A stretch of DNA of 64,000 bases from Oopsacas minuta. Lineage: Eukaryota > Animalia > Porifera. The position numbers and the translations under genes are program-made. The stretch's first letter is position 1. The number at the start of each line of letters is the position of its first letter. Positions 1,583-64,000 of the stretch are shown here, piece after piece. The DNA is taken from the NCBI GenBank assembly GCA_024704765.1, contig JAKMXF010000333.1:124001-188000 (forward strand), written 5' to 3'. Under the pieces are notes generated by a model. It worked only from the letters and a program-made list of their open reading frames with translations. It made no database searches and was not told the DNA's origin.

Positions 1583-1607
1583 ACTATGATATTTATAATG
1601 TTAATAG
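1579..1607 (+). other. Candidate 3' splice acceptor (…ataatgttaatag|GG), phase 1
   Basis: An AT-rich tract ends in TAG|G at 1605-1608, with a branch-like ctgaac at 1579-1584. Splicing here would enter the giant frame in phase 1, just before the first module. Confidence 0.3.
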
Positions 1608-1618
1608 GGTGTCAAGCT
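1586..1618 (+). other. Possible short N-terminal signal peptide (MIFIMLIGCQA|V)
   Basis: A hydrophobic stretch ends in small residues (C-Q-A) directly before the first, N-terminally truncated module. At 11 aa with no charged n-region it is short, so the true start may lie in an upstream exon. Confidence 0.35.
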
Positions 1619-4600
1619 GTTTCTCTAACCAGCAGCACATTGGACTTGAACATCGGATTCCTAACTCTAACCTTTGACGGTGATATTAATGATACCACGG
1701 CTGATTGTACCAAAATTAATATCCAACAGAGAAGTACTGGCGGAGTGGTTATTCCTTTAAGCAACTCGTTTGTAGCAAACAGTCTTTCTACGACTGAACT
1801 ACTTTGTGATCTTGATATAGACAAGATAACTCTGCTGAGGAATCCTAGCGTTGCAACTCGTATTAACAATACATTTATCAATGTTCTTGTTGGTGCTAAT
1901 ATCGAGGATACATTAGGCATACCTGTTCGTGTACCTATAATGTCTACTTTACCAATAAATGATACTACGAATCCATCTCTTGATCGTTTTCTGTTATTTG
2001 ATCTAAACTTGGGGCTTTTAGAACTAAGTTTTGATGATTATGTTGATCCAACAACTTTGAATACCACAGCCCTAATAATACAGTTTGATTTCGAAACCAA
2101 TTATTCAATGCCTGAACTTTTCTACAGATTAACTGGCGGTACATGTTCTGCTAGCTGTGAAAATAGTAAAACTTTATATATTACATTATCACCAGCTGAT
2201 CTCAATCAAATTAAAACCCGGCTTCAGGTGTGTACTTCAAAGACAGATTGTGTACCCACGTTCTCAACTTTCTTCATACAGGACTATGCTGGCAATCCTG
2301 TTGTTGTCGCTGCAAATGTGGAAGAATTGGTTGCTGAGAGATTGTTAAGAACATTCGTTTCGGACGTTACGTCTCCTAACTTAACTGCTTTTGATATTGA
2401 TCTTGAGGCAGACACCATAACGCTATTTTTTGACGAACCTGTTGATGCGGTGGATACTCTTAATGTAAATTTAATGACGTTACAAGGTTCTAAAACAGAC
2501 CTTACTGATTCTGTATCTCTCTTAGATACATTTACCTCTGATACTTATGAGTTTGTAGTAACTCTTTACCTCAGTTCAGACAAGCAGTTAATCAAAGATT
2601 CTGTTTTCTTTAATAGTGAGAATGACACATTCATTTCATTTACATCTGATGCAATTAAAGATATTGCGGGTAACAAAGTTCTCCCAATACTATCTACTGA
2701 TGCGCTACGTGTTAGGAATTATACTAAAGACACGACTCCTCCCTTTCTCATCTCTTTTGAACTTGATCTAGATGCTAACTCTATAACATTTTTATTTTCT
2801 GAATTGGTCCTCGTCAATTCTCTTATCCCAGTAACTAACATATTTCTATTGAATAACACAACTGGAAATGTGAATATCACTTTAGGAGGGATTATACAAG
2901 GCGGTCCTTTCACTCAAAACTCTGAATTAATTTCTATAACTCTGCTGTTAGATGATGAGTCGATTAGTCGTATCAAGCGTGACGATAGGATTGGTAATAG
3001 TACAGCTGATACTATATTAGGACTCTTTTTTGGTGCGTTTCAAGACAGAAATGATCTCTACAATCGGGCAGATACAGTACAGAATATATCCTTCGTTCCT
3101 GATATGACTCGACCCAGTCTGATAGAATTCATTCTTGATATGAACGTGGGAGAGCTATTGATGACTTTTGATGACGTCATTAACTCTACTTCGGTTATAT
3201 TCTCATCCATTATACTTCAAAATGATGGTTCTGACCCAACCCTGGAGAGAGAGTTAACCGGTGGTGTATCTTCCTCAGATAGTAATCTTGTTCTCACTCT
3301 AGGACTTGATTTTGATGATGTAACTTACCTCAAAGGTACTCTTGGTTTGGCAATAACCTCTGCTAATACCTTTATTAGCATGTTTAACGACGCTTTCTTG
3401 GATACTAATGGTTTCATGATCAATCCAATCGGTCCTCGAAGTGCACTTGCAGCTTCAATGGTAATCCCAGACACAACTCCGCCAATTCTCCAATCATTTA
3501 GATTAGACATGGATAGTGACAATCTCTATGTTACATTTGATGAGCCTGTGAAAGAAAATCCAATCATATTCTCCCAAATTGCTATAATAAATTCATCTTC
3601 TTCCTCACGAGCTGAAGTTATTCTGTCGGGAATAGATTCAACAATGATTAGCCACACGAAAAGAGTTATCACTCTTAATCTCAATATCGATGATACAAAT
3701 GATCTCAAGGAAATACGAAACCTCGCTACTAATGAAAATAATACTCTAATCGATTTCCTAAATGACACATTTCAGGATACTGTTGATAATGGTATAATTG
3801 GATCTGTCATACCTTCTCTACTGCTTGTACCTGATAGTACTTCACCACGTTTGCAGGAATTTGTTCTTTTCGATTTAGATTCAGGAACTTTTACACTTAG
3901 TTTCAACGAGCCAGTAATTGAGAGTGCTGTTAACTTTACTGCTCTCAGCTTCCAAAATGATTTCGAAACTAACATATCGAATCCTGAAAATTTCTACACC
4001 CTAACCATGGCAGTAGTAATACCAACTAATTCCACACCAACTCTACTGGTTACTTCACAGTTTTCCAATTATGATTTGAATCAGATTAAATTGAGAAATG
4101 GGCTGTGTGAAGAGAGCACTAACTGTGTTCCTACAATTGAAATGAATTTCATTTCTGATAGAGGGACTACCCCTAATCCTTTATCCGCTATAGTTAATGA
4201 TAGGACGTTTTTAATTGAAAGACTCTTACAAAATTTTGTAGACGATGCGACATCTCCTAATCTCCTTAATTTTACACTAGACCTCAGGACAGATCAATTG
4301 CTATTGACATTTGATGAACCTGTAAACGGACTCGTACTAGACTCTTCTCTTATCTCCCTGCAAGACAGAGCTTCTAATGCCAATTCTTCTGTCGTAATTG
4401 CAATCACTGGAGCTACCACAACAGATATCAGAGAAATTGTAGTTACTATCCAGCTGGGCGATGTAGCTCGTAACTTAAGAGCATCTGGATTCAATAATCC
4501 TAACAATACATTCCTTTTCGTCTCTTCGGGAGCTATTACCGATGTGTCTACTCTCTCCAACCAATTAGTAGATATTCCCAATGATAACGCACTCCAAGCT

Positions 4601-7600
4601 TTGGATGTATTTATAGATGATATCACACCGAATATTACATCTTTCGTTCTAGATCTAGATAGCAATCAGTTGCTGTTAACCTTCTCAGAAGCGATTAGGG
4701 CAAGCGAGGCTAATTCTAGTCTATTCTTTCTACAGGATACATTTAGTCTATTTGGTTCTCCGGTAGAGATCGAGCTAACAGGGAGTTTATTTATTGATGA
4801 GAATGGAAATCCTATAGGAGATGGAGTCGATATAGTTACAGTCAATTTAGCGTCAAGTGCTATCGCATTACTGAAGACCAATGATGACATTGGAACAAAT
4901 TTATCCAACACATATATCCGTATAGACACTTTTGCTATTATTGATATGACTGAACTTGCTAATATCGTTGCAGTCAGTCAGGCATCTTCAGTAATACCTG
5001 ATACTACAAGATCACAACTGTTATCTTATGATTTAGATATGGATGTCGGCCGTCTTGACTTTACTTTTGATGATGTTGTGAATTCAGAATCTGTTTTATT
5101 TTCATCTTTCACTATACAAGATGGATCCAATGGTGTCCAGAGGGTACCACTAACTGGTGGTAATGTCACCAGCATTAGTGGATTTGTCTTTTCGTTCCTT
5201 CTCACTGACCCTGATCTTACTAATATAAAGTTGGTGGGTACATTAGCAACAGGTATAGGGGATACCTATGTTATTATGTCAGCTGACGCTTTGAATGACG
5301 CATCTGGTTTGGATGTGATTGCTATTACAAACGGTAATGCATTGCAAGTTACGAATTACACAGAGGATAGTACAGCGCCAACTCTACTGGGATATACACT
5401 TGATTTAAATTCTGGTACATTTTCTATGACATTTAGCGAGCCACTATCAAATTCTAATCCAAATGTTACTGCATTCGCTTTACAAAATTTGGCCATAAAT
5501 TCCACAAGTATGGTGCGCTTGACTTCACCTCCTAATTCGATTTCACCATCTCCTAATCGCACCATTTTCGAAATAATCATAATTGACGCTGATTTAAATA
5601 CCATTAAATTGGATCTTAATTTAAGCACTAATGTTAATAATACTTTTCTAGTGTTTGATGCAGGTGCGGTATCCGATAGGTCTGTACCTCCTAATGACAT
5701 TTTAGCACTAGCTATAGGCCAAATGGCTCTTGATTTTTTTCCTGACACTACACCTCCAAATTTTATCCGATTTTTGTCATTCGATTTAAATTCTGGGACC
5801 TTTGTGTTAAATTTTGATGAGCCAGTAGATGTCAGCACTGTAGTACTATCCTCTCTCTCATTTCTTAACCACTTGACAAATCCCACTGAAGAATACATTT
5901 TAAAATCTTCTGTATGTAACTCTTCTCTTGATTGTATCAATGGTGCTCAGGTACCCTTTGTTCTGAGTATTGACGATCTGAACGAAATCAAACGACGAGA
6001 ATCTCTGTGTACTTCTATGCTTGATTGTTATGCAACTAACAATCGTACTTTCATACAAGATATGGTCGGAAGTAATATCACAGATATTTCTGTTATTCAA
6101 GTAGAGACTTTTATACAAGATACTACTGCTCCTAATTTACTAGAGTTTGTTTTAGATTTGAATACTTCCGTCCTTTCTCTAACTTTTGATGAACCAATAG
6201 ACGTAACTAGCTTAATTGTAAGTGGTATTTCTATACACAAGAATAGAACAACTGTGTCCAATATTACTCTATCTGCTTCTACAGCAGCGAATACTGTAGC
6301 TACAAGATTCTTGATGCTAGAACTGAATGAAGATGGTAATTCTTTGAAAACAGCTTCCTTTGCAACTAATTTGTCAGATACATTTCTCTCAATTCAGGCC
6401 ATAACCATCAGTGATGTAGCACTTACAGATAATCTAGTCACTAGCATTCCTCTCAGTGAGGCTCTACAAGCTACACAATTTATACCAGACACTACTCCTC
6501 CTACACTTCAGAGTTTTGCTCTCGACCTTAATACCAACCAGCTGATTATGACTTTTAATGAACCAATTCGTGCAAATTCCTCTCTCCAAATCAATCAAAT
6601 TTATTTGCAGAATAGTTCATCTAGCCCAACTTTGTCATTTCCTCTTATCGGAGAAGTTTTTACAACTTCTGGTTCCCCAGTATTCGATGGCTTACAAGTA
6701 CTACGAGTTGATCTTGACATCCCTTTAATTTCTGATATAAAGACAAATATGAATGTAGGTACCTCCATGTTAAATACATTTCTCAGAGTTAATGAATCTA
6801 GTTTCACAGATATGGTGGATCTTCCAAATACATTTTCAATAGTACAAGTAGTTGATTTTATCCCTGATTCTACTCCTGCAGAACTTTCGCAGTTTTCACT
6901 AGATATGGATGAAGGTATTCTCTCACTACTATTTACTGATGCAATTCTTACCTCAACGATTGATTTTTCATCACTGCTAATTCAAACGGTGCCTATCTCA
7001 GATGGATTAGTCCAACTTTCTGGAGGTAATATATCAGGCAATGCTCTTGAAGTAGATATTTTAATTTCAGCACAAGATCTAGTTCAATTGAAAATAAATA
7101 ATTTATTAGCAACGAGTATAAATACTACATTCCTTTCATTTGGTATTGGTGCAATTCTAGACACTAATGGTTTCTCTATTCCTCCAATTTTTTCCGCTAT
7201 TCAAGCCTCCGCCTTTACTCCTGACGAAACTTCACCCAATTTAGCCAACAGTACTCTTGATTTGGATACTGGCAGTATTACTTTATTTTTTGATGAGCCT
7301 ATTGATATACTTTCTTTAGCTTTTGACAACTTAACTATTCAGAGCTCTACGAGCCCAGCTCTAGAGAGCACTACATTAACTGGTGTTGGTAATATTGAAA
7401 ATCTTGATAGCAGTTTTACACGAATTTACATCCCTTTGATAGACACAGATCTCAACAGCCTAAAGATTCAGACTTCACTCGCTACTGCTCTATCTAACTC
7501 CTATATCTCTTATTCTATGTCACTACTTACAGATGTTGCTGGAAATCCTATTACTCAGGATTTGAATGGAGTTCAATTTGGATCTTTTATCGCTGATATG

Positions 7601-10600
7601 ACAAATCCTTCTTTATTTTCATTTCTCTTATTCGACCTCAATACTGGGGAGTTTATATTTCGTTTCGATGAGCCTATAGATGTTACTGCAATCGATTTCA
7701 CAGCTGTCACTTTTCAAGAGGATTTTACAATTGACCCAATTATTGGTGGTTTTGTAACTCTATCTGATGGCATCTGTGATGCTGCTAATGGTTGTGTTAA
7801 TGGACAGAATGTCTCCTTTCAAATTCTCCAAGAAGATCTTAATAGAATCAAGCAGTTCGACGGTCTTTGTGAAGCTACTACTAACTGCGCTCCAGTAATT
7901 GGTTATAATTTCATCTTTGATTTAGCTATTCCCGCTAATCCTTTAAATATAATACCAAACGCTAACACCTTCCTTAGCCAAAGAATATTAGATACCTTTA
8001 TTCCTGACACAACAAGCCCTCAACTTGTAGCATTTGATTTGGATCTTTTGAATGACATAATAGTCTTTGAATTCGATGAAATAGTTGATGGTAATCTAAT
8101 AGATGTCCGTCTAATTACATTACAGGCATCTGCATCTAATGGCCCTACTGTTACACTTAATGATGCAGTAGAAATAGAATCTAGAGCTGACGTAATTACA
8201 TTTCGGTTGCTGTCGGATGCCAGAAGGATTAAAAGCGCACCTTTCGCAACATCAAGAAGTAATACTTTCCTTTTTCTACCTAATCTCACTGTACAGGATG
8301 TGTCTGGTAATTTCATTCAGGCTATCCTAAGTTCAAATGCTTTACAAGTACGGAATTATATCAATGACACTGTTCCTCCTACTGTGCAATCATTTAATTT
8401 AGATTTAAATTCTGGTCAGGTTTGTATCACTTTTAGTGAATTGATATTTTCTTCAGAAACATTACTCAACCTCAGTCGTTTTTTCCTGATAAATGAGAAC
8501 TCCTCTACTCCTTATGTCTCTATCCCACTGACTGGAGGTATATTAGATACTACTGGCCAGTCTGAAATTTCTCAAGCCTGTGTCAATCTTTCAACTGATG
8601 CACTTATTGCCATTAAAGGAAATACAAGCATTGGCATAAACCAAGGCAATACATTTCTTTCCTTAGAAACAGGTGCTATAACAGACAGAAATGACCTGCC
8701 TAATTTGTTAGACAGGACAATGGTTAACGTTATCATACAAGACGCAACTCCTTCAAACCCAATTGAGTTTGCTTTGGACATGAATACAGGGATAGTATCA
8801 CTTACCTTTGATGATGTTATAAATTCTTCACTCATAGACTTTACTGGTCTGCGTTTACAAAACTCTGAAATGTTAACTTTGTTATCTGAAATGGTAATAT
8901 TGACTAGTGGCACTCTTCTCAGTCCGACTGGATTTGTGATTGATTTTAGGATTAATGATACACAACTAGTCTTAATTAAGAGTATGCTTAACCTTGCTAC
9001 TAACATTGAAAACACATACTTATATGTAGAGTCATTTTCATTCACTGATACTTCCTATCCATATGTCATTCCTGTCAATTCAGACACTCTTCAAGCCAGT
9101 AGATTAACCCCTGATGCAACACCGCCTATTCTTATTAACTTTACGCTTAACTTAAATAGCGATATACTTATATTAACATTTGATGAGCCGATGAACACAT
9201 CATTAGTCAATGCTGCCGGGTTCGTGATTCAGAACACTCAAATATCTCCAATACAATTCGTACGTCTACAGGGTAGCGATGATATCTTTGCCAACAATCT
9301 ACTCACTGAAATCACGATTCAATTGTATCCTTCAGACGTTAATTTTATTAAATTGAACGAGAGTCTGGCTAGAAGCGAACAGACTACTTATTTGACATTT
9401 GACAATGGATCTGTATCAGATGTCTCTGGTAATACTATCATAGGTGTTGCTATAGGGATTGAAGCCTCTTCATTCGTAGCTGACAAAAATTCTCCTTCTC
9501 TCACCTCTTTCAATATCTATGATAATAATCAAGGTCTTATTGAGCTGCAATTCAACGAGCCAGTCAACACAAGCAGTATTAACATCACTGGGCTAATCTT
9601 ACAGAGGGACTTCTTTGTACAGCCATCTGTGCTATCTCAACGCTCATTCCAACTCACTCAAGCCTTTTGCAATAGAACTTTTGATTGTATGAATGGATTT
9701 ATTATTACAATATCATTTGGGCTTGATGACTTCAATGGTATTAAACTGAATGAATATATCTGTACCTCTACTACAAATTGTGTACCACAAATTGAATCAT
9801 CATTCATCAAGGATATGTCTGGAAATGAAATAAATGAATTGCCGAATACTGCTACATATCTGGAGGCTAGATTGTTGCGTAGTTTTATTGATGATTCTAC
9901 TGATCCAATTTTGTATTCTTATGAACTTGACCTTAATACTAACATCTTGATCGCTAGCTTCAACGAACCTATCAATGTTAAATACTTTAACGTTACTGGT
10001 ATCACACTTCAATCCTCTCAAGTAAATGGGGATGAGATTACCCTATCTTCATCCACAGTTTCTGGAAAGATTGCAATAATTGTTACGATTGACCTCAACG
10101 ACGATGCTAACTTCCTAAAAGCAGCTGACTTCGCTACAAATACATCTAATACATATTTATATCTCCAAACTTACACAACTTTTGATCTATCTAATGCTCG
10201 TAACCCTGTTAAACAAATTCTATCAACTGATGCATTGCAAGCTACTACTGTTACGTCTGACACTACTCCACCTCAAGCCATCCAATTCATCCTTGATTTG
10301 AATAGAAATAAATTGTTTATTACTTTCAGTGAACCTATCAAAGCTATAGCATTGAATTTGACTAGAATTACTCTTGAAAATATGGATAGTCTGAGTCCCA
10401 TTGTTTCTATTCCTCTCTCTGGGACCTTGTTAACTACTAACGAGACTACCCTTACCAATGGGTTAATTGCTGTTTGTCTCATTATTGATGATCCTACCCT
10501 TTCAAATATCAAATCAAATGATTTGATTGGAACAAGAATTGAAAATACTTTTCTCGTTGTTACTTCTGGAGCGTTCTCTGATATGAATGATCAGTTGAAT

Positions 10601-13600
10601 ATGGACCACCAAATCCAATCCAATCAAGTCATTTCGGATCAAACTTTGACCCAAATTGATAACTTTTCACTTGACCTTAACTTAGGATTGTTGCAACTCA
10701 ATTTTTCAGATGTTATCGACGCTAGCTCTGCTAAAATAAATTCTATCTCTTTCCAAGACGCTCCGCTTGCAAGTTACCGTGTTCCATTGACTGAAGGCTC
10801 AGTTATTTTTTCATCGCCACTATCTGTTACTGTCCAATTGACCAACGATGACATAATTTCCCTAAAGAGTACTCCTATCATTGCTACTTCGATATCTACC
10901 ACATATCTTGTTATGAGAGCTGATGCTTTTTCAGATATTTCTAATTTAAATATTCTTTTGATTCCTGACGGATCAGCTCTAAGAGCATCCTACTTTATTC
11001 CTGATGTAACTTCTCCTAATTTTGTTAACTTCACTCTAGACATGAATGTTGGTATACTATTGGTTACCTATGATGAACCATTGGGTGTTAATTCTGTTAA
11101 CGTAACCTTAATCACCATTGCAAATATGACTTCATCAAGTACATCTATTCCCGTTACTGGATATTCTGATATCAACTTTTACAATAGCAGTACTATTATT
11201 GCTATCACCTTAACTTTGTTAAATCTCAATGCTATCAAAGCTGATCAGGGTATAGGTAATTCTCAGGATAACACGTTCTTACGCCTACTAGAAGGCACAG
11301 TGTTAGACGTAGCTGGTAATCCTAACAACTTAATAAATACAGGGATTGGTGCTTTTATTGCAGATCAGACTGGACCTACACTCACTTCATTCCTACGTAT
11401 AAATATAGATGTTGGAACGATTCAATTCGAATTTGACGAACCTATCCTAGTATCAAGCATTAATCATTTGGGGTTTACTCTTCAAGACGATTTCTATAAC
11501 AATTACACTGATATATCATCTTTCTATACTCTTGAGAAGCCCGTTATCTGTACTGTTGCTGATGGATGTGTTGATAGTACAATTCTTAACTTTACTCTCG
11601 ACCCTGATGATCTGAGCAATATCAAGGAACGATTAAGCGTTTGTACAGTGAGAACTAATTGCGTCCCTGTCTTTGAATCCTCTTTCATCACAGATATGGC
11701 TGTTGTACCTAACTATCTAACTGCAGTACCTAATGGTAGGACTAATCTTGATGAACGATTATTGCAGGAGTTCTTATCTGACACAAGTAATCCAACTCTT
11801 GATTTTTTCTCTCTCAATCTGATCAAAGATACTCTCACCCTCACATTCAGTGAGCCAGTAGATGTATCTTCCATACAAGTTTCTAACATACTTCTGCAAT
11901 CATCAGCTACTGGTGGAGAAAACCTCACATTATCATTCAGCACTGCAAGAGGGAGTATTGCAAAGATTATCATAATTGATCTCAATGAAGATGCTCCTCT
12001 CATAAAAGCTGAGAATATCGCATCTTCTGAAAACAACACATTCCTCTCAATTCAGAGCGGCACCGTGTTTGATGTTGCTCTCATCCCTAACCCGCTAATA
12101 GCTATATCTTCTGACAATGCTCTTCAAGTCGATGAATTTATTACAGATTTTGACCCCCCGTTTTTGCAATCCTTCGAGCTGAATCTTAATCTCAATCAGT
12201 TAATATTAACCTTCAATGAGAGAATAAAAGGAGCTCAATTATACTTGTCTCGTTTAAGTTTACAGGATTCTGATAATTCACCCAACTTTGCCATTGTCCC
12301 AACTGGCACACTTACAGACATGTTTGGAGAACCTGTTACCAACGATATACAGATTATTTACATTAATCTATTACAAGAACCAGCTCTTTCTTTGAAAACC
12401 AATCCTGATTTCGGAACATTCCAGAACAATACATTTCTCTCTGTAGAATTCGCAGCTTTTGAAGATCTTATTGGTTTACCTAATGCTCCTGATACTACCC
12501 AGGCTTCATCTGTCACGGAAGATGTGACTAGAGCTAGTGTTGAATCTTTCACTTTAGACTTAAACACAGCTCAGCTCTTACTAACTTTTAACGATGTAGT
12601 AGACAACTCAACTGGCATATTTAATGGTATAACTATCCAAGAGAGACAGCAAGGAGCTCTTCGTGTCACATTAACCGGTGGTAGTGTAATATCACCAAGT
12701 GGCTATGTCATTGTCATTCTGCTAGAGAGCAGTGACATTATTCGCCTCAAGAGTACGTCAGGACTTGCAATTTCTGAATCTGATACATTCTTGGTTATCA
12801 CTGATGCGGCTTTTAGAGATACCGCCGGGAGAAACATTATCGCAATTCAAGATAGTGGAGCTTTACAGGTGAACCCATTCATTCCTGACCGCACGCCTCC
12901 TCTATTGATTGAATTCACACTGGATATGGATAATAGTGAGCTCAGTGTTACCTTTGATGAACCTATCAATCCTGATTCTATCATTTTCAATCGACTTCGG
13001 CTCTTGAACACATCTGTAATTTCTGCTCAAATTGAAGTTGTAACACTATCAACTCCTATCTCCTCCATTCCCTCTCCAGATTTTACTGTGTTTTTGATAA
13101 CTCTCAACACCACATCTGACATTGAAAGTTTAAAATCTATCGCAGGCTTAGCCACCGATATCAATAATACCTTTATTCAAATCCTTGATGGAGCTTTTGT
13201 AGACATGGCTGAGGTTAGTAATGAAGCAAACCAAACTCTTAATCCAATCGTTAAAGCTTCAGACCTCATGCCAGATTTACTATCACCTTTTCTAGTTACT
13301 TTCATACGTGTTGATATGAATTTAGGTCTCGTGACATTATCCTTTAATGAACCAGTTGATGTCTATTCTGCTAACTTCATAGAATTCACTTTGCAAAGTG
13401 CTTTTTCTGTTAATTTAGCCGAAACCTCTGCTTACTATACCCTCAGCGGAGGAATTTGTCTCTCTTCATTTGGATGTAGCGCTGGATCTGAATTTACTTT
13501 TCAATTGAATGAAAATGATCTTAACCAAATAAAATCTAGAAATGGCTTATGCATCTCATCACAGACTTGCAGTCCAACTTTTACTTCAGATTTTATTACA

Positions 13601-49600: not shown

Positions 49601-52600
49601 GATATAATACCTCCTTCACTTCTCTCATTTTCGTTGGATATGGATTTAGGATTGATTTCATTGACGTTCAGTGAGGCAGTCAACATAACTAACTTCTCTC
49701 CCACAACTATAGTACTACTTAGTCTTAATTCAACTGATTCATCTATTTCAACATTTACTCTAACTGGAGGTACTATTTATGCGCTTAGCCCTTCTGTTAT
49801 TGACTTCATGCTCTCAATTTCTGATTTTTCTGATATCAAGAAACTTAGAAATCTTGCTACTTCTCGTGAGGACACTTTCCTCTCCCACTCAGCAAACCTT
49901 ATCACAGATTTATCGGATTCCTTAACGTCGTCCATTCTTCCAGATAATGCCTTACAGGTTTCTGAATATACCCCTGATACTACTGGCCCTATTCTCCTTA
50001 ACCTAACTATTAACTTTAATGACAATGTGGTGACACTATTGTATGATGAACCAGTAAATACAAGTACTCTGCTTACCAATTTGATTACATTATCTAATGA
50101 CCAGGGTTCTAGTATTTCCCTAGCAACAGGATTAATACTATCTAATATTCCAGATGAAGAGGTGTATTTCGTATTAGAACAACAAGACCAACATATGTTG
50201 AAGACTATTAGCTTTGAAAGTGTGTGTTTATCAAGTTGCTCACTTACAGCTCCTGCTGGGATTGTATTCGACATCGCTCCAATTCCTATTCAATCCCAAG
50301 AGTTAGCAACAGCTAATAATATCTCTGCTAACATAATCCCTGATATAACACCACCTACACTTACCCAATTCATCAGTTTTGATCTTAATCTTGGCCTTAT
50401 CTTCCTATCCTTCGATGAGCCTCTTAATGTTAGCTCTATTCAAATACCATTCCTCTCATTAAATAGTGATTTCTTTGACTCTGAGTCAACTATCAATTTG
50501 ACTAATGCAACAGTTCTATCAACTCAATTCGACGTCATGCTCAGGTTAGAACTTGTACCAAGCGATTTAGATAGAATCAAACTTGATACAGATACCTGCA
50601 CTAGGCAAAGAGACTGTTACATCAGGTTTTCTTCCGATTTTATTGTTGATAGTAGCAATAATCCTATTCTTGCGGTTATTGAGAATGTAATTCCTACAAC
50701 AATTGAATACCCACTCTCTCTTGTACCTGATACTGAGCCTCCTCAACTCATTTCATTCGACATTGATGTAAATATTGGTGTGATTAATATGACATTTAAT
50801 GAACCAGTAGACAGTACTAGTTTCCAACAGCAAGTTCTTACTCTGCAAAATGCATTTTCAAAGACAACAGACTATGTTCCTTCCTCAATTTTTATTACTA
50901 GTCCTAATGGCCGCGTTCTTCAGGGTCAGCTCCTGATAATTCCAGATATAGAAAATATCCAATCAGATTTTGAGCTCGCAATTAGTCCAAACTCCACTTA
51001 CATTAGCTATTCCTCAAGTTTAATTGACGATATGGCAGGTAACCCTATTCAAGAACGACTAGACAATGTTAATCCCCTCTTGGTATCAGGCTTCATCGGG
51101 GACACAGTGAGCCCTATTTTAGCATCATTTGTGACATTTAATTTGAATGCAGAAACTTTTACAATTAGTTTTAACGAGCCAATTAACAACGGTACCTTAA
51201 ACATCTCTGCTCTTTCTTTTTCGAGTGATTCTTCAGGTACTACACGTATTTTCCTTACTGGAGCAAAATCAATAAGTGCAACTCCTGACCAGAAAGATCT
51301 TGTTGTCTCTCTTACGGACAATGACGTTACTACAATTAAGCTAAATCCTGCTCTCTGCACGAGTAGAACAGATACATACATATTTATGGAACAAGATGCT
51401 ATTCGTGATGTTGCTCAGAATAGTTTGGCAGCTTCTGGATTTATACAAGTAGGCTCTTTTGTACCTGATACCACTGCCCCTGAGTTAATCGAATTTTCTC
51501 TTGATATTGACAGTGGAGTGTTACATTTAACCTATTCCGAAGTTGTTAGAACTTCGTCATTAAACCCTATTCACTTAACCCTGCAGAACACCATCCCTCC
51601 TACTTCTACACTATCTCTCTCAGGTGGCTCTACACTCGATCCCAATAATCGATATTTTTCTTTAACCATTTCAGACACAGATCTCAATAATCTCAAGCGT
51701 GAAGTAGATCTTGCTTCATCATTTAACACTACCTTCATTGCAATTGCTCCTTCATTTATTACTGATGTGTCTTCTATTCCCTTGAGGAGCATATCTTCTT
51801 CGTCACCAATCCAAGTTTCTAATTTCTATTCAGATCAAACAGCTCCTGAACTCATTGCCTATACATTCAACCTTGATAATCAAGTACTTAGTCTTCAGTT
51901 TTCTGAAGCTATTGATGAGCAGACTTTCGACGAACAACAATTAACCTTACAATCTGACCTTATGGGCCTATTTGGAATCGGAGTATCATCTCTCACTCTC
52001 ACTGGCAGACAGGATCTTATCCTAATTGGTACTACAGTTCTTAACCTTACCCTCACTGATCAAGATACCAACTTTATTAAGACTGATGTCAATTTCGCTG
52101 TCAACACCAATACAACTTTTATTAGCATTACAGATGCTTTAGTAGTTGATTTCAATAATAACGCCATACTAGCAATTGATCAAAATACTGGATTAGAAGC
52201 TTCGGTATTTCTACCCGATAACCAGCCTCCATTGCTAAGTGCTGCTTCAATTGACTTGAATACTGGTATCTTGCTGCTAACCTTCAGTGAGACCATCAAT
52301 GCGCTTTCTTTTACTCCAACTCTTGTTCAACTGAGTAGTGAGATTGGCTTAACTTCTCCCTCTACAATATTATACCAACTAACCGGCGGAAATCCCTCGA
52401 CAGTTAATACAACAGAAGTTTCTTTAAATCTTACTTCTGCTGACCTGAATTCTATTAAACAAATTGAGAATCTCGCTTCCCCTCAAAACCCTGGATTTGT
52501 TACTGTACAAGCCAATGGTATTGGAGATATGGTTGGGAATAGTATAGCATCCGTCTTCATTGGCATAGAGTTGGATCCCTATACACCTGATAGTATTAAT

Positions 52601-55600
52601 CCAACTCTCTATGATTTCACGTTTGATTTAGACCAAGATTTCCTCCTGCTAACATTCTCTGAGACAATCAATGTCAGCAGCGTTATTCCTAGCGAAATTG
52701 TTATTCAAAGTACATCATCATCTCTTCTTTCATTTCATCAGCTTACAACTTCTACTGTTTCTTCTTTGTCTAACTCTGATATTATTGAGATCCTAATATC
52801 TAGATTTGATAGTAATGAGATAAAGAAACAAACCTCGCTTGCAACTACTGCAAATTCAACATTTATCTCATTTGGAGCAGATTTCGCTCGAGATATGAAT
52901 CTGAACCTTATCCAACCAATTCAATCTGTCTTTGCACTTAGAGCAGAGGTTTATAATACTGACGTTACACCTCCTTCTCTCACAAGTTTCTCTCTAAATC
53001 TTGATAATGGAAACCTAAATTTGACTTTTGATGAAACAATTCTGTTGGATAGTTTCATTGTGGAGAATATCGTTTTGCTGGATGGTCGTGGTACAGGAAG
53101 ATTTGTTTTGACTAATACAAGTGTCCTCACTACTGACTCAGATAGTGACGTTCTTACCGTTCTTGTAAGCAATGAAAACCTAAATTTTATCAAGGAAGAT
53201 TCAGATCTTGCTACTACCGATCTCACTACTTTTATTTCTTTTTCTCCTCAACTGGCTCAAGATATGTCTGGTATTGACATAATATCAATTCCAGAGTCAA
53301 ATCCAATGATAGTCAGTTTCTACTTTGCTGACGAAACTCCTCCATCTTTGACCAGATTCGATCTACTCATGACACAAGGCACAGAACCGCTTCAACTAAT
53401 ACTTTATTTTGATGAGACTGTTCTCTCTGACACGTTCGTTGTATCTAGAATTGTTTTGCTTGACAATCTTGTCCCCTCATTTAGCTACAGATTAACAAAC
53501 AGAGATGCTCTGGTACAGAATTCACCCTCAATTATCCAACTAAACATATCGGACACTGATATTGCTGGTATTCGATCTCAAAAACCTCTTGCTCAAGATG
53601 TTGATAAAACCTTTCTTACCATTGAGGCTAACTGCATTCAAGATACTGAATTAATTCTCAATATTGAGAATACCATTCCTGTAACAGACTATACTGCAGA
53701 TTTGGTCAATCCTCAACTTTCTTTGATTCTCGGAGCCCTCGACCTAAATACTGGTATACTCTCCCTTACCTTTGATGAAGATATAAATGTTGATACTACA
53801 AGAATTGAGTTTGTAACCTTTCATAATACAATTAATAGTACTGGAGATAACCACACGTTATTCAATGCCACTGCAATGTCTTCGTCGAATCCTGTGGAAG
53901 TACTCGTTGTTATTGGTGAAGAAAATCTTGACTTTATCAAGACTCTTCCTAATATATTTGATACATTAGCCATTTACCTAGACTTACAATTTGACTTTAT
54001 CAGAGATATTGCCAACAACCCATCAGATCCTACGAATGCTAATTCTCTGCCTCTAATTTTGGTCCTTACAGACTCTACTAATCCAGATTTAGTTAGTTTC
54101 AGAATTGATCTGATGGATGGTTTTTTGGTATTTTCTTTTAGCGAAACTGTGGACACCCTTACTCTTGATCCTTCTCTTTTCACTCTTCACAATTCTGGTT
54201 CAATACAGAGCCATACCCTTACTGGTGGTACTGTTGATTCTACACAACGCTATTCCACTTATCTTACTCTCAATCTTGATGAAGATGATCTCAATGACAT
54301 CAAAGCACAGAATAACCTAGCGGTAAATCTGACAACTAGCTTTATTTCTGTACAAGTCGGTGGTATTCTCGACACATTTGAGAATTCATTGAATGCAAGG
54401 AGTAACCTCCCTGCTTCTATGTATGGCATAGACGAAACTCCTCCAACCTTGGTGTACTTTTCTCTTGACCTAAACTCCGCGGTTATCACTTTATCTTTTG
54501 ATGAAACAGTTCAGATTGGCACATTTGATTTTACTAGAATAACTCTATTGAATTCAATCAACGGTAACATTACGTATAGTCTACAGAGCAGTGTTCATAC
54601 TGATTACAATGCAGAGATAGTTCAAGTGTATTTATCACTACAAGATTCTAACTTTATTAAAGGCCTAAGATTATGTGACTCTCAAATAAACTGTTTTATC
54701 TCAATCACTCCCGAGCTAGTGCAAGACATGGTGAACAGACCAGTAATTGAGATACCACGAAGTGCTCCTCTTCCAACATTTAATTTTACACGCGATAGCA
54801 CAGCCCCATCCCTGGAAGAGTTCGTTGAATTCAATCTAATATCAGCTACTATTAAATTATCTTTTTCAGAAATTATTGATGCTAGCAGTTCTAATATCAC
54901 AGCTATCACTTTGCAATCCTTCTTTGAATCTCCTCAATCTAGTAGGACGCTTCTCTCTGGTACAATTAATTCAACTGATTCGACTGAGTTAGATATTATC
55001 ATCGGCGAAGTTGACATTCTAAGGATTAAGGAAATTGGAGATATTTGTGACCGACGTTCCCATTGTTATATCACACTAACCTCGTTTTTCATTCGTGACT
55101 TTGCTGACAATGCTAACAATCCTATTACTGACGGTCCTCCTGGTTATGTAGTGACCAGGTTCATATCTGATTCCACACCTCCTTACCTAATATCTTACAA
55201 TCTTGACCTTGATAATTCAATGTTAACTCTATTTTTCAATGAACCAGTTGTCACTTCATCCCTGGATCCAACTGGGATTTCATTTCAAATCTCTCCTCTT
55301 TCACAAGTTGAAGATCAGATACAACTCACTGGAGGGTTTTCTAATAGCAGTGATGCCTCTCCTACTATTGACTTCTTTGTTAGCAGAATTGATCGGAATA
55401 TAATTAAGAATAGTAATATTGCAAAATCTAAGGATACAACCTTTCTCACACTAATAAGTGGTACAATTACCGATTCTGCTATCAATAGGAATCCTATTGT
55501 AGCTATTACTAATGGGAATGCTACGCAGGTTACCAACTACACTGCAGATACTACTGCCCCTATATTGAAAACATTCCAGCTAAATCTCGATGCACATGAG

Positions 55601-58600
55601 ATACTTCTGAGCTTTGATGAACCTATTTCTACCTATACTTTTAACATCACTTCGATATCATTACAGAACTCTGCTACATCCCCTTCAGTTTTACTGAATC
55701 TCACAGACAGTTCAATTTTTGAACAATTGATATATTCTGAAACAATTACTATTTTACTTTCAGAAATTGACATTGTTAGCATAAAACTGGATAATAATCT
55801 CGCTACAGATTCTAATAACACATTCATAAACTTGCTCTCAAATACTTTGGAAGATTCCTTTGGTAACAATATCTTAGATACTTATGGTCATCAGGCTATT
55901 ATTAATTTACAAGACATTACCCGTCCAGAATTGATTGAATTCTCAATCGAAATGCAGACCGGTAGACTAAATTTAACATTCAACGATGTAGTACGTGCCA
56001 ATACCTTTGATCCTACAGCAGTGATGATTCAGAGAGGTCAGAACTCTTTACCAATGCATCAAGCTACACTAACCAGCTCTACCTCCGCTTTATCAGTGAA
56101 TGATTTCATTATCTATGTTACTATCAGTATCCAAGATCTTATACGAATCAAAGAAGTACCATTCCTCGCTGTCAACAAATCCACTACATATCTTGTGATG
56201 CAAGCATTTGCTATAGACGACTTATTGGGAGTAGATGTGTTAGCAATTACTAACGGTAAAGCGATTCAAGTGGAAACTTTCATCGCTGATAATATCCCTC
56301 CAGAATTATCTGAATTCAGTTTTGATCTCAACTCTGGAACATTAACTCTAACATATACAGACACTGTTGCTGCAGACAGTTTATCAATTACATCTATTAC
56401 ACTTAGTGATTCTGATTCAATTATTGCAAATCGTGTAACTCTTACCAATGGAACCGTCTCAAGGTCATTATTTGGGAATGAAGTGACATTGACAATCGAC
56501 AACGATGATCTAAATACAATTAAAGAGGAGACTACTCTAGCTATCTCCAATACGACGATTTATCTTTCTGCACAGCCTGATTTTATTGTTGATCTTGCTG
56601 GAAACTTTGCTCCTGAGATTTCATTAACAAGTCCCATACCAGTATCTCAATTCGTTAGCGACACAACTGGAGCAATTTTAACATCATTTGATTTGGATAT
56701 GAATACAGGGATTGTCACATTATACTTTAGTGAAACTGTAAATGCATCAACTATTGACCCTTCAGCAATAACCTTGATGCCTCAGAGCGATTCAACATCT
56801 CGCATTTCAGAAACTTTTACCCTGAATGGACAAACCAGTACTTCAACTATTAACAAACCAGTTGTCACTACCTTAATGTTATTTAATGATGTTAACTCTA
56901 TAAAAGCTATTACTACTCTTGCTTCTAACGAAAATAACAGCTTTATTGCTCACACCTCTCTCTTAATCCAGGACATGAGTGGTAATCTAGCCATAGCTAG
57001 GAGTATTTCTAGTGGTATTCAAGTTTCATTATATCAACCTGATGTTGATCCACCTCAACTCAATTCATTCGATTTAGATATAAACGTTGGTACCCTGATC
57101 CTTTCATTCTCAGAAACTATGCGTCCTTCATCACTAAACTTTGGACTGATTACTTTACAAAGTTTTGCTAACATAAGTGATCCGGACTCCTCTTTCTATA
57201 CACTACAAGGATCCGTTTTCTCTCCAATAGAATTTTCTACCGTTACTATAACACTCTCTGATACTGACTTGTTTGCGCTCCAGCGTGATGACTTGCTTGC
57301 AATTTCTCAAGTGACTACTTTCATTAGTTTTCTTGAAGGCGCTATATCAGATACTACTGGTGTACCTGTTATATCTACTTCTAATCAAACAGCCACTATG
57401 GTTTTTCTATATACCGAAGATACAACTTCTCCCTCAGTGCGATACTTCGACCTCGATATGGATGAGGGAATTTTACAAATTCATTTTGATGAAGTAATAC
57501 GTATTAGCACCCTTAATACAAATTCCTTCATTCTCTTGAGTGGTAACAATACTACAGATAATCCTACTACTTTGAATGATTTATCCCTGAACATATCTGA
57601 AAATTCACACATTCTCACTTTTGTTATTGGTTTGGATATATTAAACACTCTGAAAGCGAATATTGCCATAGCTCGGGATAGAGGAACAACATATTTACGT
57701 CTGCTAAGTGGTTCTTTACTGGATATGTCTGCCAGAAGTTATATTGAAACATTTCCTATTCCCGTTCGATTCTTTACTTCCGATACCACGAACCCAACTC
57801 TCCTATCCTTTTCTTTGGATCTAAATTTAGGTGAACTAAGACTAGTATTTGATGAGACTATGAATACTAATCCCTCTGATGTGTTGATTCCTGGATTGAC
57901 GATTCAAAGAACTATTTCAGACTCTAGTGAATCTGTTCCACTAAGAAATGGTAGTACTGTAGGCACAGGGCTCCCTTCGTCTGCGGTCACTATTGATCTT
58001 TCTGAAGAAGATTTGAATCGACTAAAATCTCAACCTACCTTAGGTACTGATGTATCAAATACTTTTCTAACTATTTTACAAGAGACAATCCAAGATATGA
58101 ATTCTAATCCAGTCAATCAAATTACTCCTCTTCAGGCCAAGCAGTCTAATTCTGTAGTACCTGATACGATCTTGCCTAACCTTGATGCATTTGATTTCGA
58201 TCTCAATACAGGCTTGCTCAATCTCACCTTCTCAGAATATGTGGATATTTCAACCCTTGAGCTTTCTGAACTAACTTTTCAGAACCTCTTGAATTCACCA
58301 ACTCGTTTCTATGCTCTCACATCTCAGTTATCTTTAGAGCAGTATGTAACGATAATTTCTATACAACTTACTGATTTTGACCTTAACGAGATAAAGAAGA
58401 GACATACTCTCAACCCCTCTTGCTGTGACTCTAATACCACTACATTCGCATCAATTACTGCATTGCTTATTCGTGATGCTAATAACAACCAAGTATCTCC
58501 TCGTTCACTCCCTGTTACAATATTTATAGCTGATACTACTCCTCCATCTTTTGACGAGTTTGTATTAGATTTGAATTCTGGCGAGCTCTCACTTGCATTT

Positions 58601-61600
58601 TCTGAGACAGTTGTTTCTGGATCTCTAGTTATAACCAGTATTACTCTACAGAGTGGTCTTACTAATACAAGTACGGTATTGACCTTTACAGGTGGAGCAG
58701 AATTGAATGGAGATGGAAATATCCTTAGAGTTGGTCTCAGCATCACAGATCTTAATGAGATTAAAAGGCTAAGGCTCTGCTTTCAACAATCTTCATGTTA
58801 TGCCTCGTTTCCATCCTCAGCCCTTCACGACACAAGTTTAAATTTCGTTGTCAACACCACATTCTCACAGCCAATACAGGCCACAAGTATTATCTCTGAT
58901 ACCACCTCTCCTCGATTATCTTTATTTTCCATTTTTAACCTAAACCAAGGTTTCCTTACTTTGGTATTTGATGAAACTATTGAACCTGCTTCTTTAAGAC
59001 CTGAATTGCTAAGTTTGCACATATTTCCAGTAGATTCGGACAGTTATCAACTTTCCTCCAATGCTTCATTCAGTAGTGAAGTTTCAACTAACATCACCAT
59101 TAATCTTACAGCGATTGATGTAGAACAAATCAAACTGAATGAACAGTTATGTTCTCTCCGGTTAAGTTGTTGGGTGAGATTCACTTCCTCCTTCTTGGTA
59201 GATAGAAGTAATAATATGGTTACACCTGTTTCTGAATCTGAACTGGATCTGAATCAAATTCCTAGTGTTTTCATTGGTGATAGTATTAGTCCTGATATTA
59301 CTAATTATTCACTCGATCTTGATGCGAATCGCTTTGTGCTTACGTTTGATGAACCACTTCGTCTTGATAGCTTTACTATATCAGATATATCGATTTTGAA
59401 TTCTTCTAATTCCTCGGGCTCATACTACCAACTTCAAACCAATGATATCTTATCAGGATTTAGCAAGATTGTTTCTTTCACATTGCAAACCGTAGATGTA
59501 TTTGCTATAAAATCCAATAGATTCTTAGCAACTGATATAGATTCTATCTATCTTAGTTTCAGCGATCAATTAGTTACCGATATGGCGTTAAACCCTGTCA
59601 TTCCACATAATGTAACTGGAGAATTGGTCAAAGTTTCAGTTTTTGTTCAAGACATGACAAAACCTCTCCTTATAAACTTTTTGGTGTTGGATATAAATAC
59701 AGGCCAGCTTCAACTTGAATTTGATGAACCTATTGACATAGAAACATTTTTCGTTCAAAGTTTATTCTTAACTAATGATTTTGCTATCTCCACCTCGGTT
59801 AATTTGACAGGAGGAACTGTTGAAACACTGAATTCTGATTCTACAATTTTCCTGTACTTTATTTCCGATTCAGATTACCGGGTTCTGAAGCTTGACCCTA
59901 CAATTGCCACTGATAGAATTGATAGTTTTACTTATATTCTTTCAAACTTTATCTCTGATTATAGTGGGAATTTCTTGGATGCCGTAGTGACACCTCGGCA
60001 AGTGGTTACATTCTTTCCAGACATAACTCAACCTCAATTACTTTCATATGATTTAAACATGAATACTGCTCTCTTATTGCTTACATTCGATGATGTTGTT
60101 ACTAGTAACACACTTGATGCAACTAAGTTTACACTCCAATCTACTAGGTCTGGCATTGGTAGTTCATATCAATTGACAGGTGGTTTCAGCAATATTACCA
60201 ATGATTACGTTATCACTATTATGCTCATGAATTCTGACCTCAATTTCCTAAAAGCCTTATCTGATTTGGCTACTAATGAAAATAATACTTATCTGAGCCT
60301 TCAGTCCGAAGCAATCATGGACAGTTTCGGTCAACCAGTTCGCTCTATTATCATTTCCCAAGCACTCCAAGTATCTAATTTTACTTCTGATATGATAGAA
60401 CCTACCCTAGATATGTTCACCTTCGATGTTGGCTCGGGTGCGCTTACATTTACTTTCTCTGAAACAGTGAACATCAGTACATTCAATTTGGGCACAGTTA
60501 TACTTCAAAATACCGGGAACGGGAATAACCAGGACACCATCTCAATTACACTTTTTGGAGGATATACCAGTCCATCTGATGTTGGTGATATGTTTACAAT
60601 ATTTTTGAATACTTCAGATCTAAATACAATCAAAGAACAACCTAATCTAGGGACAGAGGATAATAATACTTTTATTTCAATTATATCTGGTACCATATCC
60701 GATATGAATGGTAACCCAGTGGTTGGTATTCCTATAACGGCAGCGCTCGGTGCCACCACTCACATACCCGATCTTCAGCCCCCTTCTCTTGTGAGCTGGA
60801 GTTTAGATATGGATAGTGGCATGGTGATTCTCACATTCTCCGAGAGCGTCTCTGCCCTATCTCTTAAACCAGAATTATTTATTTTACAGCACTCAACTTT
60901 ATCAGTTGGCGATCAAATTCAGACTATATCCTTCTTGGCATCGAAAGCTGGTCATGATAATCCTATACTATTCTTCACTCTTCCTTCTGATGACTTAAAT
61001 GCACTTACAAGCAAAATTCAGATTGCTACCTCACAAAGCAACTCGTATATCCGCTTCCAAACAGGTGCAGTACAAGATTTGAATTCTAATTCTATTAATG
61101 CCGTCGGTAATGGAGATGCTATTCAGGCTGAAACTTTCACGCGTGACATGAAAGCTCCAATGCTCGTCAGCTTCACCCTTGATCTTGGTACAGAAGAGTT
61201 AATTCTAACTTTTGACGAAACAGTACGTGGTTCCAGTCTCATTGTATCTAAGCTCTCCTTAGTCAATTCAAATACCTCTTCTTCTGGCCTTATCAACATC
61301 ACAGTTGAGGAAATTGATACTACAGCAATTAACTCAAGCATATTACGTATACAGCTAACCATTGACTTTCTCAACGAAGTGAAAAGATTTGTCACGATTG
61401 GGACTGAACCTTCGAATACCTACTTGATTCACGAAAGTAATGTTGTGGCAGATATGAGTTCCAATCCAGCCGATTCTCTCATTCTCCAGCTTGCAGTTCA
61501 AGCCCAACAAATTAACAGAGACACTCAATCTCCATCTCTTAATGAATTTGACCTCGATTTGGATACCAATTCTCTTGTTATCAGTTTTTCTGAAACTGTT

Positions 61601-64000: not shown

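Follow-up and report, generated by a model that had tools for sequence, protein, structure and literature searches.

The glass sponge Oopsacas minuta carries a single open reading frame (ORF) of 147 kb that is filled, at 99.4% coverage, by 395 modules of ~124 residues, all of one type. We conclude that this is probably one intact, intron-less gene, and infer that its product would be a secreted, stiff, micrometre-long extracellular rod acting as a periodic scaffold. The ORF (C333:125583-272792) comprises 49,070 stop-free codons, contains no N and no introns, and predicts a product of ~49,069 residues (5.36 MDa, pI 4.05). The window, meaning the whole 64,000-nucleotide stretch of DNA that was analysed, covers the first two fifths of this unbroken exon, and another 85 kb lies 3′ of it:

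1586..64000, + strand: giant single-exon ORF, first 20,805 codons (first ATG at 1586, open from 1583)
148793 on the window's scale (G000:C333:272793), + strand: stop codon TAA of the giant ORF, downstream of the window
1586..1621, + strand: N-terminal leader, short and hydrophobic, a candidate signal peptide (from the sequence, Kyte–Doolittle values and homologue P0018)

Frame +2 is open from position 1583 to the end of the window (20,806 codons), and the remaining five frames carry 0.03–0.13 stops per codon. Codon-position bias of the giant ORF is strong. The same contig bears eukaryotic genes and has the GC content of the sponge, whose published genome is compact (61 Mb in 365 scaffolds, 36% GC). 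In the published annotation of that genome the giant ORF is absent as a single protein, and the longest protein listed has 13,808 aa. A six-frame scan of contig positions 84001–301265 with a module HMM found no module-like DNA besides the giant ORF, and the neighbourhood 3′ of it is rich in transposons, with transposase-like ORFs that contain a hAT dimerisation domain.

Both ends of the ORF were inspected. At the N terminus, hydrophobicity of the leader is weak (19-aa Kyte–Doolittle mean 1.5–1.7), and a homologue, P0018, has a clear signal peptide immediately ahead of the equivalent truncated first module. Alternatively, the N terminus may lie in an exon further upstream that is spliced to an AG acceptor near 1608; a scan of the 6.6 kb upstream of the ORF for a signal-peptide exon found no strongly hydrophobic ATG-led ORF. 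At the other end, the ORF stops within module 395, of which only HMM positions 1–54 are present, and the remainder of this module was not found in the 28 kb downstream. We considered a GC–AG intron after the last Gly and rejected it, as in the sequence such an intron would run into stops in all three frames. The 3′ end inside module 395, where homologues stop too, is a candidate end of the gene.

An HMM built from 128 seed modules found 167 modules of ~124 aa starting inside the window, in line with the ~167 copies of one module proposed in a first-pass annotation made from the sequence alone. The starts (1622, 1961, 2363 ... 63782) and their mean spacing of 374.5 bp likewise reproduced its copy coordinates and its ~375 bp period, and the truncated first copy, placed there at 1619, begins at 1622 by the HMM. 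The motifs that it named are present in the consensus, but they are not universal: a strict D-x-x-x-P start was found in 151 of the 167 window modules, F[SDTNA][ED]x[VIM] also in 151, a DLNxIK-like segment in 104, D-x-x-[GASN]-N in 79 and an LTGG-like turn in only 33. Across all 395 modules, conservation is 100% at D1, 98% at D102, 94% each at P5 and F23, and 85% at E25. Modules abut one another: the median inter-module gap is 0 aa, and the longest is 28 aa. Pairwise identity among them is ~26% and reaches at most 51%. At the DNA level, TRF found no tandem repeats inside the ORF, and self-blastn of the entire ORF returned seven HSPs, each shorter than 100 bp. Because the modules are only ~26% identical and share almost no DNA similarity, the array is old and is not an artefact of assembly.

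For the fold, we modelled one module and one pair of adjacent modules with AlphaFold2:

43694..44065, + strand: module used for the single-module structure model
60020..60769, + strand: two-module stretch used for the tandem model (pLDDT 96.3, pTM 0.88)

The single-module model (pLDDT 95.1, pTM 0.87) is all-beta save for one helix at residues 74–82, which is the DLNxIK segment, as expected from the earlier suggestion of a beta-sandwich with a helical insertion. A Foldseek search with this model, the check that had been proposed for it, returned an Ig-like sandwich fold. The closest solved structure is the Ig-like domain of the Geobacillus S-layer protein SbsC, residues 258–358 (VIA-align Z 9.2, rmsd 2.7 Å over 101 residues, Foldseek E 1.9e-3), followed by CopC and other E-set sandwiches; this agrees with the proposed likeness to Big_5/SbsA-type domains. 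Scores of the two-module model indicate a fixed, defined junction between adjacent modules in the predicted structure, and no solved two-domain arrangement in the PDB fits this tandem model (rmsd 6–10 Å).

The suggestion that the modules might form an unnamed family also held, in that no Pfam model reaches its cut-off with the module. Scans of two 1000-aa pieces gave no match to Big_5 (PF13205, curated cut-off 23.6 bits). Among 60 single modules scanned at E up to 10, Big_5 was the sole recurring Pfam family and appeared in seven, all below threshold (best E 0.0013), and when all six frames of the genome were searched, the Big_5 HMM had no match at E ≤ 0.01, while the controls did match. The module consensus includes the D-x-T-x-P start, the F-S/D-E-P-V strand and the near-terminal D-x-A-G-N that the first-pass annotation named as Big_5 hallmarks. 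Pfam matches to DUF7638 and DUF7234 were at chance level and were discarded. A profile sequence search of the PDB gave a single match (E 0.43), and the nearest clusters in the ESM Atlas are unnamed, apart from one SWM_repeat cluster (0.92) that serves as a lead only. The view that the module is a remote Big_5-like E-set domain missed by every curated model is thus supported. Compared with Big_5 and SbsC (PDB 2ra1, 4uj6), the sponge module shares the beta-sandwich fold and the weak, recurring HMM matches; it differs in its ~15% identity, its extra DLNxIK helix, its eukaryotic host and its occurrence in arrays of hundreds.

Along the ORF, the 395 modules are organised as 13 five-module units, followed by 14 units of 23 modules each and a final 8 modules. 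The parts of this plan that fall in the window, with examples of the Cys-bearing modules, are:

1622..26128, + strand: zone 1, modules 1–65, 13 units of 5 (from lag-5 identity and Cys register)
26129..64000, + strand: start of zone 2, modules 66–167, the first 4.4 of 14 units of 23 (from lag-23 identity and Cys register)
26129-34717, + strand: unit 1 of zone 2 (from module coordinates)
1961..2350, + strand: module 2, example of the four-Cys type, with a C-x2-C and a C-x5-C pair (Cys at HMM positions 57, 60, 85 and 91)
32828..33565, + strand: modules 84–85, two-Cys pair at positions 19–20 of the first 23-module unit (from Cys register)
37325..38062, + strand: modules 96–97, two-Cys pair at positions 8–9 of the second 23-module unit (from Cys register)

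Both the 5- and the 23-module periods lie above every shuffle. In zone 1, lag-5 identity was 0.350 versus 0.282 in shuffled arrays (highest shuffle 0.305); four Cys mark the second module of each unit (two Cys in unit 2), and the Pro of D-x-x-x-P is missing from every fifth module. In zone 2, lag-23 identity was 0.299 versus 0.264 ± 0.002, and two-Cys modules recur as pairs at positions 8–9 and 19–20 of almost all 14 units, with a nested offset of 11. Identity within a phase of zone 2 is only 26–36%, compared with a background of 26%. The C-x5/6-C loop of modules 96–97 sits where other modules have their commonest N-x-T sequon.

Fragments from other sponges align with the O. minuta array module for module on single diagonals (z ~9–12). 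P0064 from Corticium candelabrum corresponds to modules 345–395, P0061 to 331–395, P0062 to 127–186, P0059 to 61–121 and P0016 from Geodia barretti to 375–383, and eight fragments with clear diagonals terminate exactly at O. minuta module 395. By these fragment alignments, module number and order are kept between sponge classes. Outside the Oopsacas lineage, orthologues are predicted to have ~335 modules and a single 5-module unit. A closer relative, presumably another hexactinellid, yielded the fragments P0036 and P0045, the latter from an ENA assembly:

33188..35836, + strand: modules 85–91, match to P0045 (78% identity over 821 aa, ungapped)

Orthologues sit on multi-megabase sponge scaffolds, the fragments, which reach 7,987 aa, were called as single ORFs, and a family member of 7,574 aa was read from a single Oscarella transcript. 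In Ephydatia, the longest annotated protein has 37,921 aa. Members were found in the sponges Ephydatia, Dysidea, Geodia, Corticium, Oscarella and Oopsacas, and in the choanoflagellates Salpingoeca rosetta, S. infusionum, Acanthoeca spectabilis and Choanoflagellata sp. UC4; this range is that of the named matches and makes no claim of absence in other groups. A few homologues from outside O. minuta come with a precomputed PF13205 match. The O. minuta genome itself has paralogous giant genes on contigs C27, C210 and C199, built from the same ~124-aa module (E down to 1e-33). They have ~127, 118 and at least 23 modules, versus 395 in the giant ORF, and some are multi-exon, in contrast to its single exon. 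The O. minuta sequence LOD99_2129 maps to C199 at 99%. A literature search on sponge Big_5 domains, giant proteins of sponges and choanoflagellates, and super-repeats in Porifera found no paper on this module family.

Several features of the predicted protein are consistent with a location outside the cell. NxS/T sequons are in excess over the whole ORF (1004 versus 858 ± 25 in shuffles), and Cys is restricted to C-x5-C and C-x2-C pairs. Nowhere in the protein does a 19-aa window exceed a Kyte–Doolittle mean of 2.2, so that no membrane segment is predicted, and no domain of any other type was found. Homologues have signal peptides and fusions to TNFR_c6, TIG, Calx-beta or fn3 domains. Because the leader of the giant ORF is short and weakly hydrophobic, the case for secretion draws mainly on analogy.

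Following this logic, the protein would be secreted and glycosylated, and would form a rod ~1.6–2 µm long, assuming ~4–5 nm per module. The acidic residues conserved close to the borders of modules (D1, D13, E25, D74 and D102) may bind calcium, by analogy with cadherins and the stalks of bacterial adhesins. In the extracellular matrix or the cell coat, the rod would then provide a structural scaffold or a ruler, and Cys-loop modules every 11–12 modules (~50 nm) could be shown to a periodic partner, in a manner resembling the super-repeats of titin on the thick filament. For cadherins, the likeness of the acidic border residues is an analogy only: Pfam scans of 2000 aa and 60 modules gave no match to the family, and the best cadherin structure aligned to the tandem model with Z 4.2.

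The nearest parallel in overall design is titin, whose A-band region consists of 6 × 7 and then 11 × 11 domain super-repeats at ~4 nm per domain. Both are giant chains of ~100-residue Ig-fold modules joined by zero-length linkers and arranged in two successive super-repeat zones; domains that share a position in the unit resemble one another more closely, and species agree in the number of modules. Titin works inside the cell and combines Ig with Fn3 domains, a kinase and spring regions, and its gene has several hundred exons. The sponge protein, in contrast, has only one type of module, from another Ig-like family, is encoded by one exon, is ~40% longer and has extracellular hallmarks (sequons, Cys pairs and acidity). 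The resemblance is one of analogy, not homology. Giant bacterial RTX adhesins, such as the ice-binding adhesin of Marinomonas with its stalk of ~120 repeats, have Ig-like extender regions whose repeats are nearly identical in sequence. They offer a second analogy, with long acidic runs of Ig-like modules of near-equal length and a rod presumed to be stiffened by calcium. RTX adhesins end in domains for ligand binding and secretion, however, and the giant sponge protein has neither; its repeats are ~26% identical, and the tandem model is a poor match to any solved adhesin pair (rmsd 7–10 Å).

Such stalks underlie one rival explanation, in which the protein mediates adhesion or self/non-self recognition at the cell surface and its array only holds a binding end off the cell, in the way of giant RTX adhesins of bacteria or the aggregation factor of sponges. 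Tandem Ig-like modules of bacterial-adhesin type, the TIG, Calx-beta, TNFR-type Cys-rich or fn3 parts of other family members, and the predicted acidic, glycan-rich character of the chain would all suit this reading. We nevertheless consider it unlikely, given that one module type makes up 99.4% of the protein, with no membrane segment, anchor signal or different terminal domain, and that RGD, LDV and KGD motifs occur at chance level, without enrichment. The proteins of the sponge aggregation factor have Calx-beta and Wreath domains; the scanned pieces of the giant protein contained no Calx-beta or other aggregation-factor domain. Conservation of module number and order between classes is also the opposite of what a fast-evolving recognition gene would show. 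The strict unit structure would suit the release of equal pieces, as would be expected of a polyprotein or multi-product locus in which cleavage or internal promoters yield smaller units of, for example, 5 or 23 modules, and 555 internal Met codons and the lack of a protein of such size in the annotation point the same way. This second rival appears less probable still: furin-type R-x-[KR]-R sites number only two in 49,070 residues, as chance would give, and neither is periodic; dibasic pairs are likewise as frequent as expected by chance; linkers at module borders have zero length; and fragments of orthologues as long as 7,987 aa are single ORFs, with the 7,574-aa Oscarella member read from one transcript.

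The ending of the ORF in mid-module, beside hAT-type transposase-like ORFs, and a module type best known from bacteria might instead suggest a gene that does not work, be it an artefact of assembly, a symbiont contaminant or a recent pseudogene cut at its 3′ end by transposon-rich DNA. This we regard as highly improbable. Without selection, a frame of 49,070 codons cannot stay free of stops, there are no internal DNA repeats able to mislead an assembler, the contig carries eukaryotic genes at the GC content of the sponge, and orthologues on multi-megabase sponge scaffolds have the same terminal module. An intact gene for a secreted extracellular rod thus remains our preferred explanation.

A stronger version of this explanation is that the whole array is translated as a single chain, which would make it the largest protein known in any eukaryote (~49,069 aa and 5.4 MDa, glycans not counted) and an extracellular counterpart of titin, a micrometre-long ruler. 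We put this forward tentatively, as a possibility well short of probable, and hold with the same reserve its corollary that the 23-module (11 + 12) plan was fixed before the sponge classes diverged. If expressed as read, the ORF would be the longest protein-coding exon, and its product the largest predicted protein, in a eukaryote. The predicted protein exceeds every eukaryotic protein found in the literature that we checked, including titin and PKZILLA-1 of Prymnesium parvum (45,212 aa, 4.7 MDa), which was published as exceeding titin. Like the sponge ORF, PKZILLA-1 comes from a giant eukaryotic gene overlooked by standard annotation; it is an enzyme assembly line with transcript and peptide support, whereas the sponge ORF is longer and is predicted from sequence to encode a structural array. 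If expressed, it would clearly illustrate how a giant gene can escape standard gene calling.

The strict super-repeat plan, kept module for module across sponge classes, suggests a periodic scaffold or a gauge of length outside the cell; we know of no comparable protein in early-branching animals. On the stronger reading above, the family, which has so far turned up in sponges and choanoflagellates only, may contribute to something that these two groups have in common, for example the fibre mesh of the feeding collar or the flagellar vane. As an unnamed domain family of sponges and choanoflagellates, it bears on the question of which extracellular structures pre-date animals.

A run of 20,806 codons in frame +2 begins at base 1583 and reaches the end of the window without a stop, and the longest open run in any other window frame was at most 196 codons. 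With downstream DNA added, the giant ORF ran for 49,070 codons without a stop, ending at a TAA at position 272793 of the same contig (C333), with 0.03–0.13 stops per codon in the other frames of this stretch and a strong codon-position bias (G 25% at position 1, 10% at positions 2 and 3). A single HMM found 395 modules. Together they account for 99.4% of the ORF, and gaps between them never exceed 28 aa, which leaves no room for an intron or another domain. The predicted product has a mass of 5.36 MDa and a pI of 4.05, carries 1004 NxS/T sequons (shuffles gave 858 ± 25) and has just 226 Cys; a scan of it found no membrane-like hydrophobic stretch. Coding-strand GC skew was strongly and steadily negative across window 1–64000 (−0.07 to −0.25). 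Antisense ORFs of 157–194 aa also lie within the giant ORF; they appear to be a side effect of sense-strand codon bias rather than genes, given that the reverse strand includes a frame with just 0.03 stops per codon:

Window 5356–5940, minus strand, antisense ORF
Window 8572–9045, minus strand, antisense ORF
Window 13501–13995, minus strand, antisense ORF
Window 49777–50274, minus strand, antisense ORF

The assembly comprises 61.46 Mb in 365 contigs, and the published O. minuta genome has 365 scaffolds and 36% G+C (PMC10280926). Since the longest protein in the published annotation is 13,808 aa, the giant ORF is not annotated there as one protein. For size comparison, PKZILLA-1 (45,212 aa, 4.7 MDa) was published as exceeding titin, and the longest predicted bacterial ORF that we found has 85,804 aa.

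The seeds for the module HMM were 128 modules, each cut at a D-x-[TSVA]-x-P start. The HMM placed 167 module starts in the window (1622, 1961, 2363 ... 63782) at a mean spacing of 374.5 bp and a median inter-module gap of 0 aa, reproducing the count and coordinates of the first-pass annotation. The motifs named there held as consensus features but not as universal ones: F-x-E-x-V occurred in 151 of the 167 window modules, a DLNxIK-like segment in 104 and an LTGG-like turn in 33. Near-invariant across all modules were D1, P5, F23, E25, D74 and D102. Module-to-module identity was about 26% (maximum 51%), Tandem Repeats Finder reported no repeat inside the giant ORF, and self-blastn of the entire ORF gave only seven HSPs, each shorter than 100 bp; the array must therefore be ancient, and repeat mis-assembly cannot account for it.

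Fold prediction of a single module, one of the checks suggested alongside that annotation, supported its proposal of a beta-sandwich with a helical DLNxIK insertion. With 60 modules supplied as an alignment, AlphaFold2 returned a confident single-module model (pLDDT 95.1, pTM 0.87), whose beta-sandwich contains a single helix (residues 74–82, the DLNxIK segment). The top solved structure was the Ig-like domain of the S-layer protein SbsC (residues 258–358; Z 9.2, rmsd 2.7 Å over 101 residues, Foldseek E 1.9e-3), after which came esterase-associated sandwiches, alpha-2-macroglobulin MG domains and CopC. No Pfam family reached cut-off when pieces and single modules were scanned; Big_5 was the only recurring family (7 of 60 modules, best E 0.0013, below cut-off), the Big_5 HMM had no match in the O. 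minuta genome, and a PDB sequence profile search with the module was blank (best E 0.43). By sequence searches, then, the module stands outside every curated family, and the earlier suggestion of a Big_5-like but unnamed family agrees with both the structural and the sub-threshold matches. A literature search found no paper on this module family. The two-module model was also confident (pLDDT 96.3, pTM 0.88), which argues for a defined module junction; a PDB structure search found no solved tandem pair matching it.

Mean identity plotted by lag peaked at 5, 10, 15 ... and at 23, 46, 69, 92 and 115 modules, the two periods occupying separate zones of the array. Lag-5 identity in modules 1–65 was 0.350, against 0.282 in shuffles (highest shuffle 0.305), and lag-23 identity in modules 66–395 was 0.299, against 0.264 ± 0.002. 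The Cys pattern gives the unit register directly. The first zone consists of 13 units of 5 modules, the second module of each being Cys-rich with 4 Cys; the sole exception is module 7, in the second unit (window 3833–4231), which has 2 Cys and has lost the C-x2-C pair. The second zone repeats a 23-module unit 14 times. Positions 8, 9, 19 and 20 of the unit are 2-Cys modules almost throughout (one unit lacks the position-19 Cys), and no whole module has been inserted or deleted across the 322 modules of this zone. The array closes with eight more modules, the final one comprising only the first 54 module positions. The Cys pair of a 2-Cys module occupies HMM positions 85 and 91, a C-x5-C loop directly after the helix and the commonest sequon site in other modules; 4-Cys modules add positions 57 and 60. 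Within the 23-unit, phases 9/20 and 12/23 resemble each other (0.29–0.30 versus a background of 0.262), indicating an older 11+12 duplication, and phases 2 and 5 of the first zone resemble these same pairs.

About 660 module candidates were found in the O. minuta genome, 395 of them in the giant ORF; others lie on contigs C27 (an 11,222-aa open frame), C210 (several exons) and C199, to which the O. minuta protein LOD99_2129 (P0029) maps at 99%. Word searches returned 58 and 78 homologous proteins, and all named matches came from sponges (Ephydatia muelleri, Dysidea avara, Geodia barretti, Corticium candelabrum, Oscarella pearsei and O. minuta) or choanoflagellates (Salpingoeca rosetta PTSG_06209, S. 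infusionum, Acanthoeca spectabilis and Choanoflagellata sp. UC4). Some carry signal peptides, or extra TNFR-type Cys-rich, TIG, Calx-beta or fn3 parts.

The modules of each homologous fragment were aligned to the HMM, and every diagonal against our 395 modules was then scored. Of the fragments, eighteen fell on one clear diagonal (z ~9–12 for the long ones), with runner-up diagonals 23 modules away from the best; they include:

P0059, 61 modules, our modules 61–121
P0062, 60 modules, our modules 127–186
P0079, 57 modules, our modules 252–308
P0061, 65 modules, our modules 331–395
P0075, 56 modules, our modules 340–395
P0066, 53 modules, our modules 343–395
P0064 (Corticium candelabrum), 51 modules, our modules 345–395
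P0089, 47 modules, our modules 349–395
P0016 (Geodia barretti), 9 modules, our modules 375–383

Same-position identity across species (~0.36) exceeded same-phase identity within the protein (~0.30), indicating that the 23-module array is older than the split of these sponge lineages and that module number has been held since. The N-terminal fragment P0059 starts where our protein starts, yet is co-linear with our modules from 61 onward, which suggests that other sponges have one 5-module unit, amplified to 13 in the Oopsacas lineage. The longest annotated protein of Ephydatia muelleri (37,921 aa; PMC10280926 supplementary file 2) may be a counterpart, as its size is near that predicted for an orthologue carrying just one 5-module unit (~335 modules). 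Fragment P0045 was 78% identical to our modules 85–91 over 821 aa without gaps; the same gene is therefore present in a closer relative.

At the 5' end, the first ATG (1586) precedes a short hydrophobic stretch, after which comes a first module without D-x-T-x-P. The N-terminal fragments P0074, P0043, P0059 and P0018 begin at the same point, P0018 with a clear signal peptide. An upstream exon could possibly join at an AG acceptor near 1608; a scan of the 6.6 kb before the ORF found no convincing candidate. A 141-bp tandem repeat (2.2 copies, 78% matches; window 1151–1463) lies just upstream, in the presumed promoter/5' region. At the 3' end, the stop falls directly past the LTG turn of module 395. 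Of the fragments with clear co-linearity, eight finish no more than a few residues away, five of them sharing the ...G-N end; the boundary is therefore conserved, as either a true C-terminus or a conserved exon end. A six-frame HMM scan of the 28 kb from the stop to the contig end did not find the rest of module 395; this stretch, which the mid-module end borders, holds transposase-like ORFs. The flanks include a hAT dimerisation domain and a PHD-finger ORF downstream and, ~20 kb upstream, an ORF with a Tc1/mariner-type HTH and DDE_3. An RRM-domain ORF upstream supports a eukaryotic gene neighbourhood. In the flanking pieces L009, L013 and L015, these ORFs are:

L009:1146–2183, plus strand, transposon-like ORF
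L009:3070–3858, plus strand, RRM-domain ORF (Pfam RRM_1, E 2.8e-15), ~17 kb upstream of the giant ORF
L013:1999–2601, minus strand, transposon-like ORF
L015:1141–2935, minus strand, transposon-like ORF

The locus thus encodes one intact giant ORF with a single module type of confident Ig-like fold, its modules abutting at a confident junction, and the product combines extracellular hallmarks and no anchor with a conserved two-zone super-repeat. An artefact or pseudogene is excluded by the ORF itself and its orthologues. The evidence goes against an adhesion stalk, which this protein would have to form with neither a binding end nor an anchor and with a module plan that is conserved, not diversifying. 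It also goes against a polyprotein, as the product has no periodic cleavage sites.

We propose instead a secreted protein in the form of a stiff rod, polyanionic and coated with glycans, which at an assumed 4–5 nm for each of 395 modules would measure ~1.6–2 micrometres; calcium at acidic junctions may stiffen it. The layout of 13 × 5 and then 14 × 23 modules parallels the two-zone super-repeats of the titin A-band (6 × 7 and 11 × 11 domains, ~4 nm per domain), which acts as a ruler. The rod may likewise serve as an extracellular scaffold or ruler, its Cys-loop modules being offered to a periodic partner about every 50 nm.
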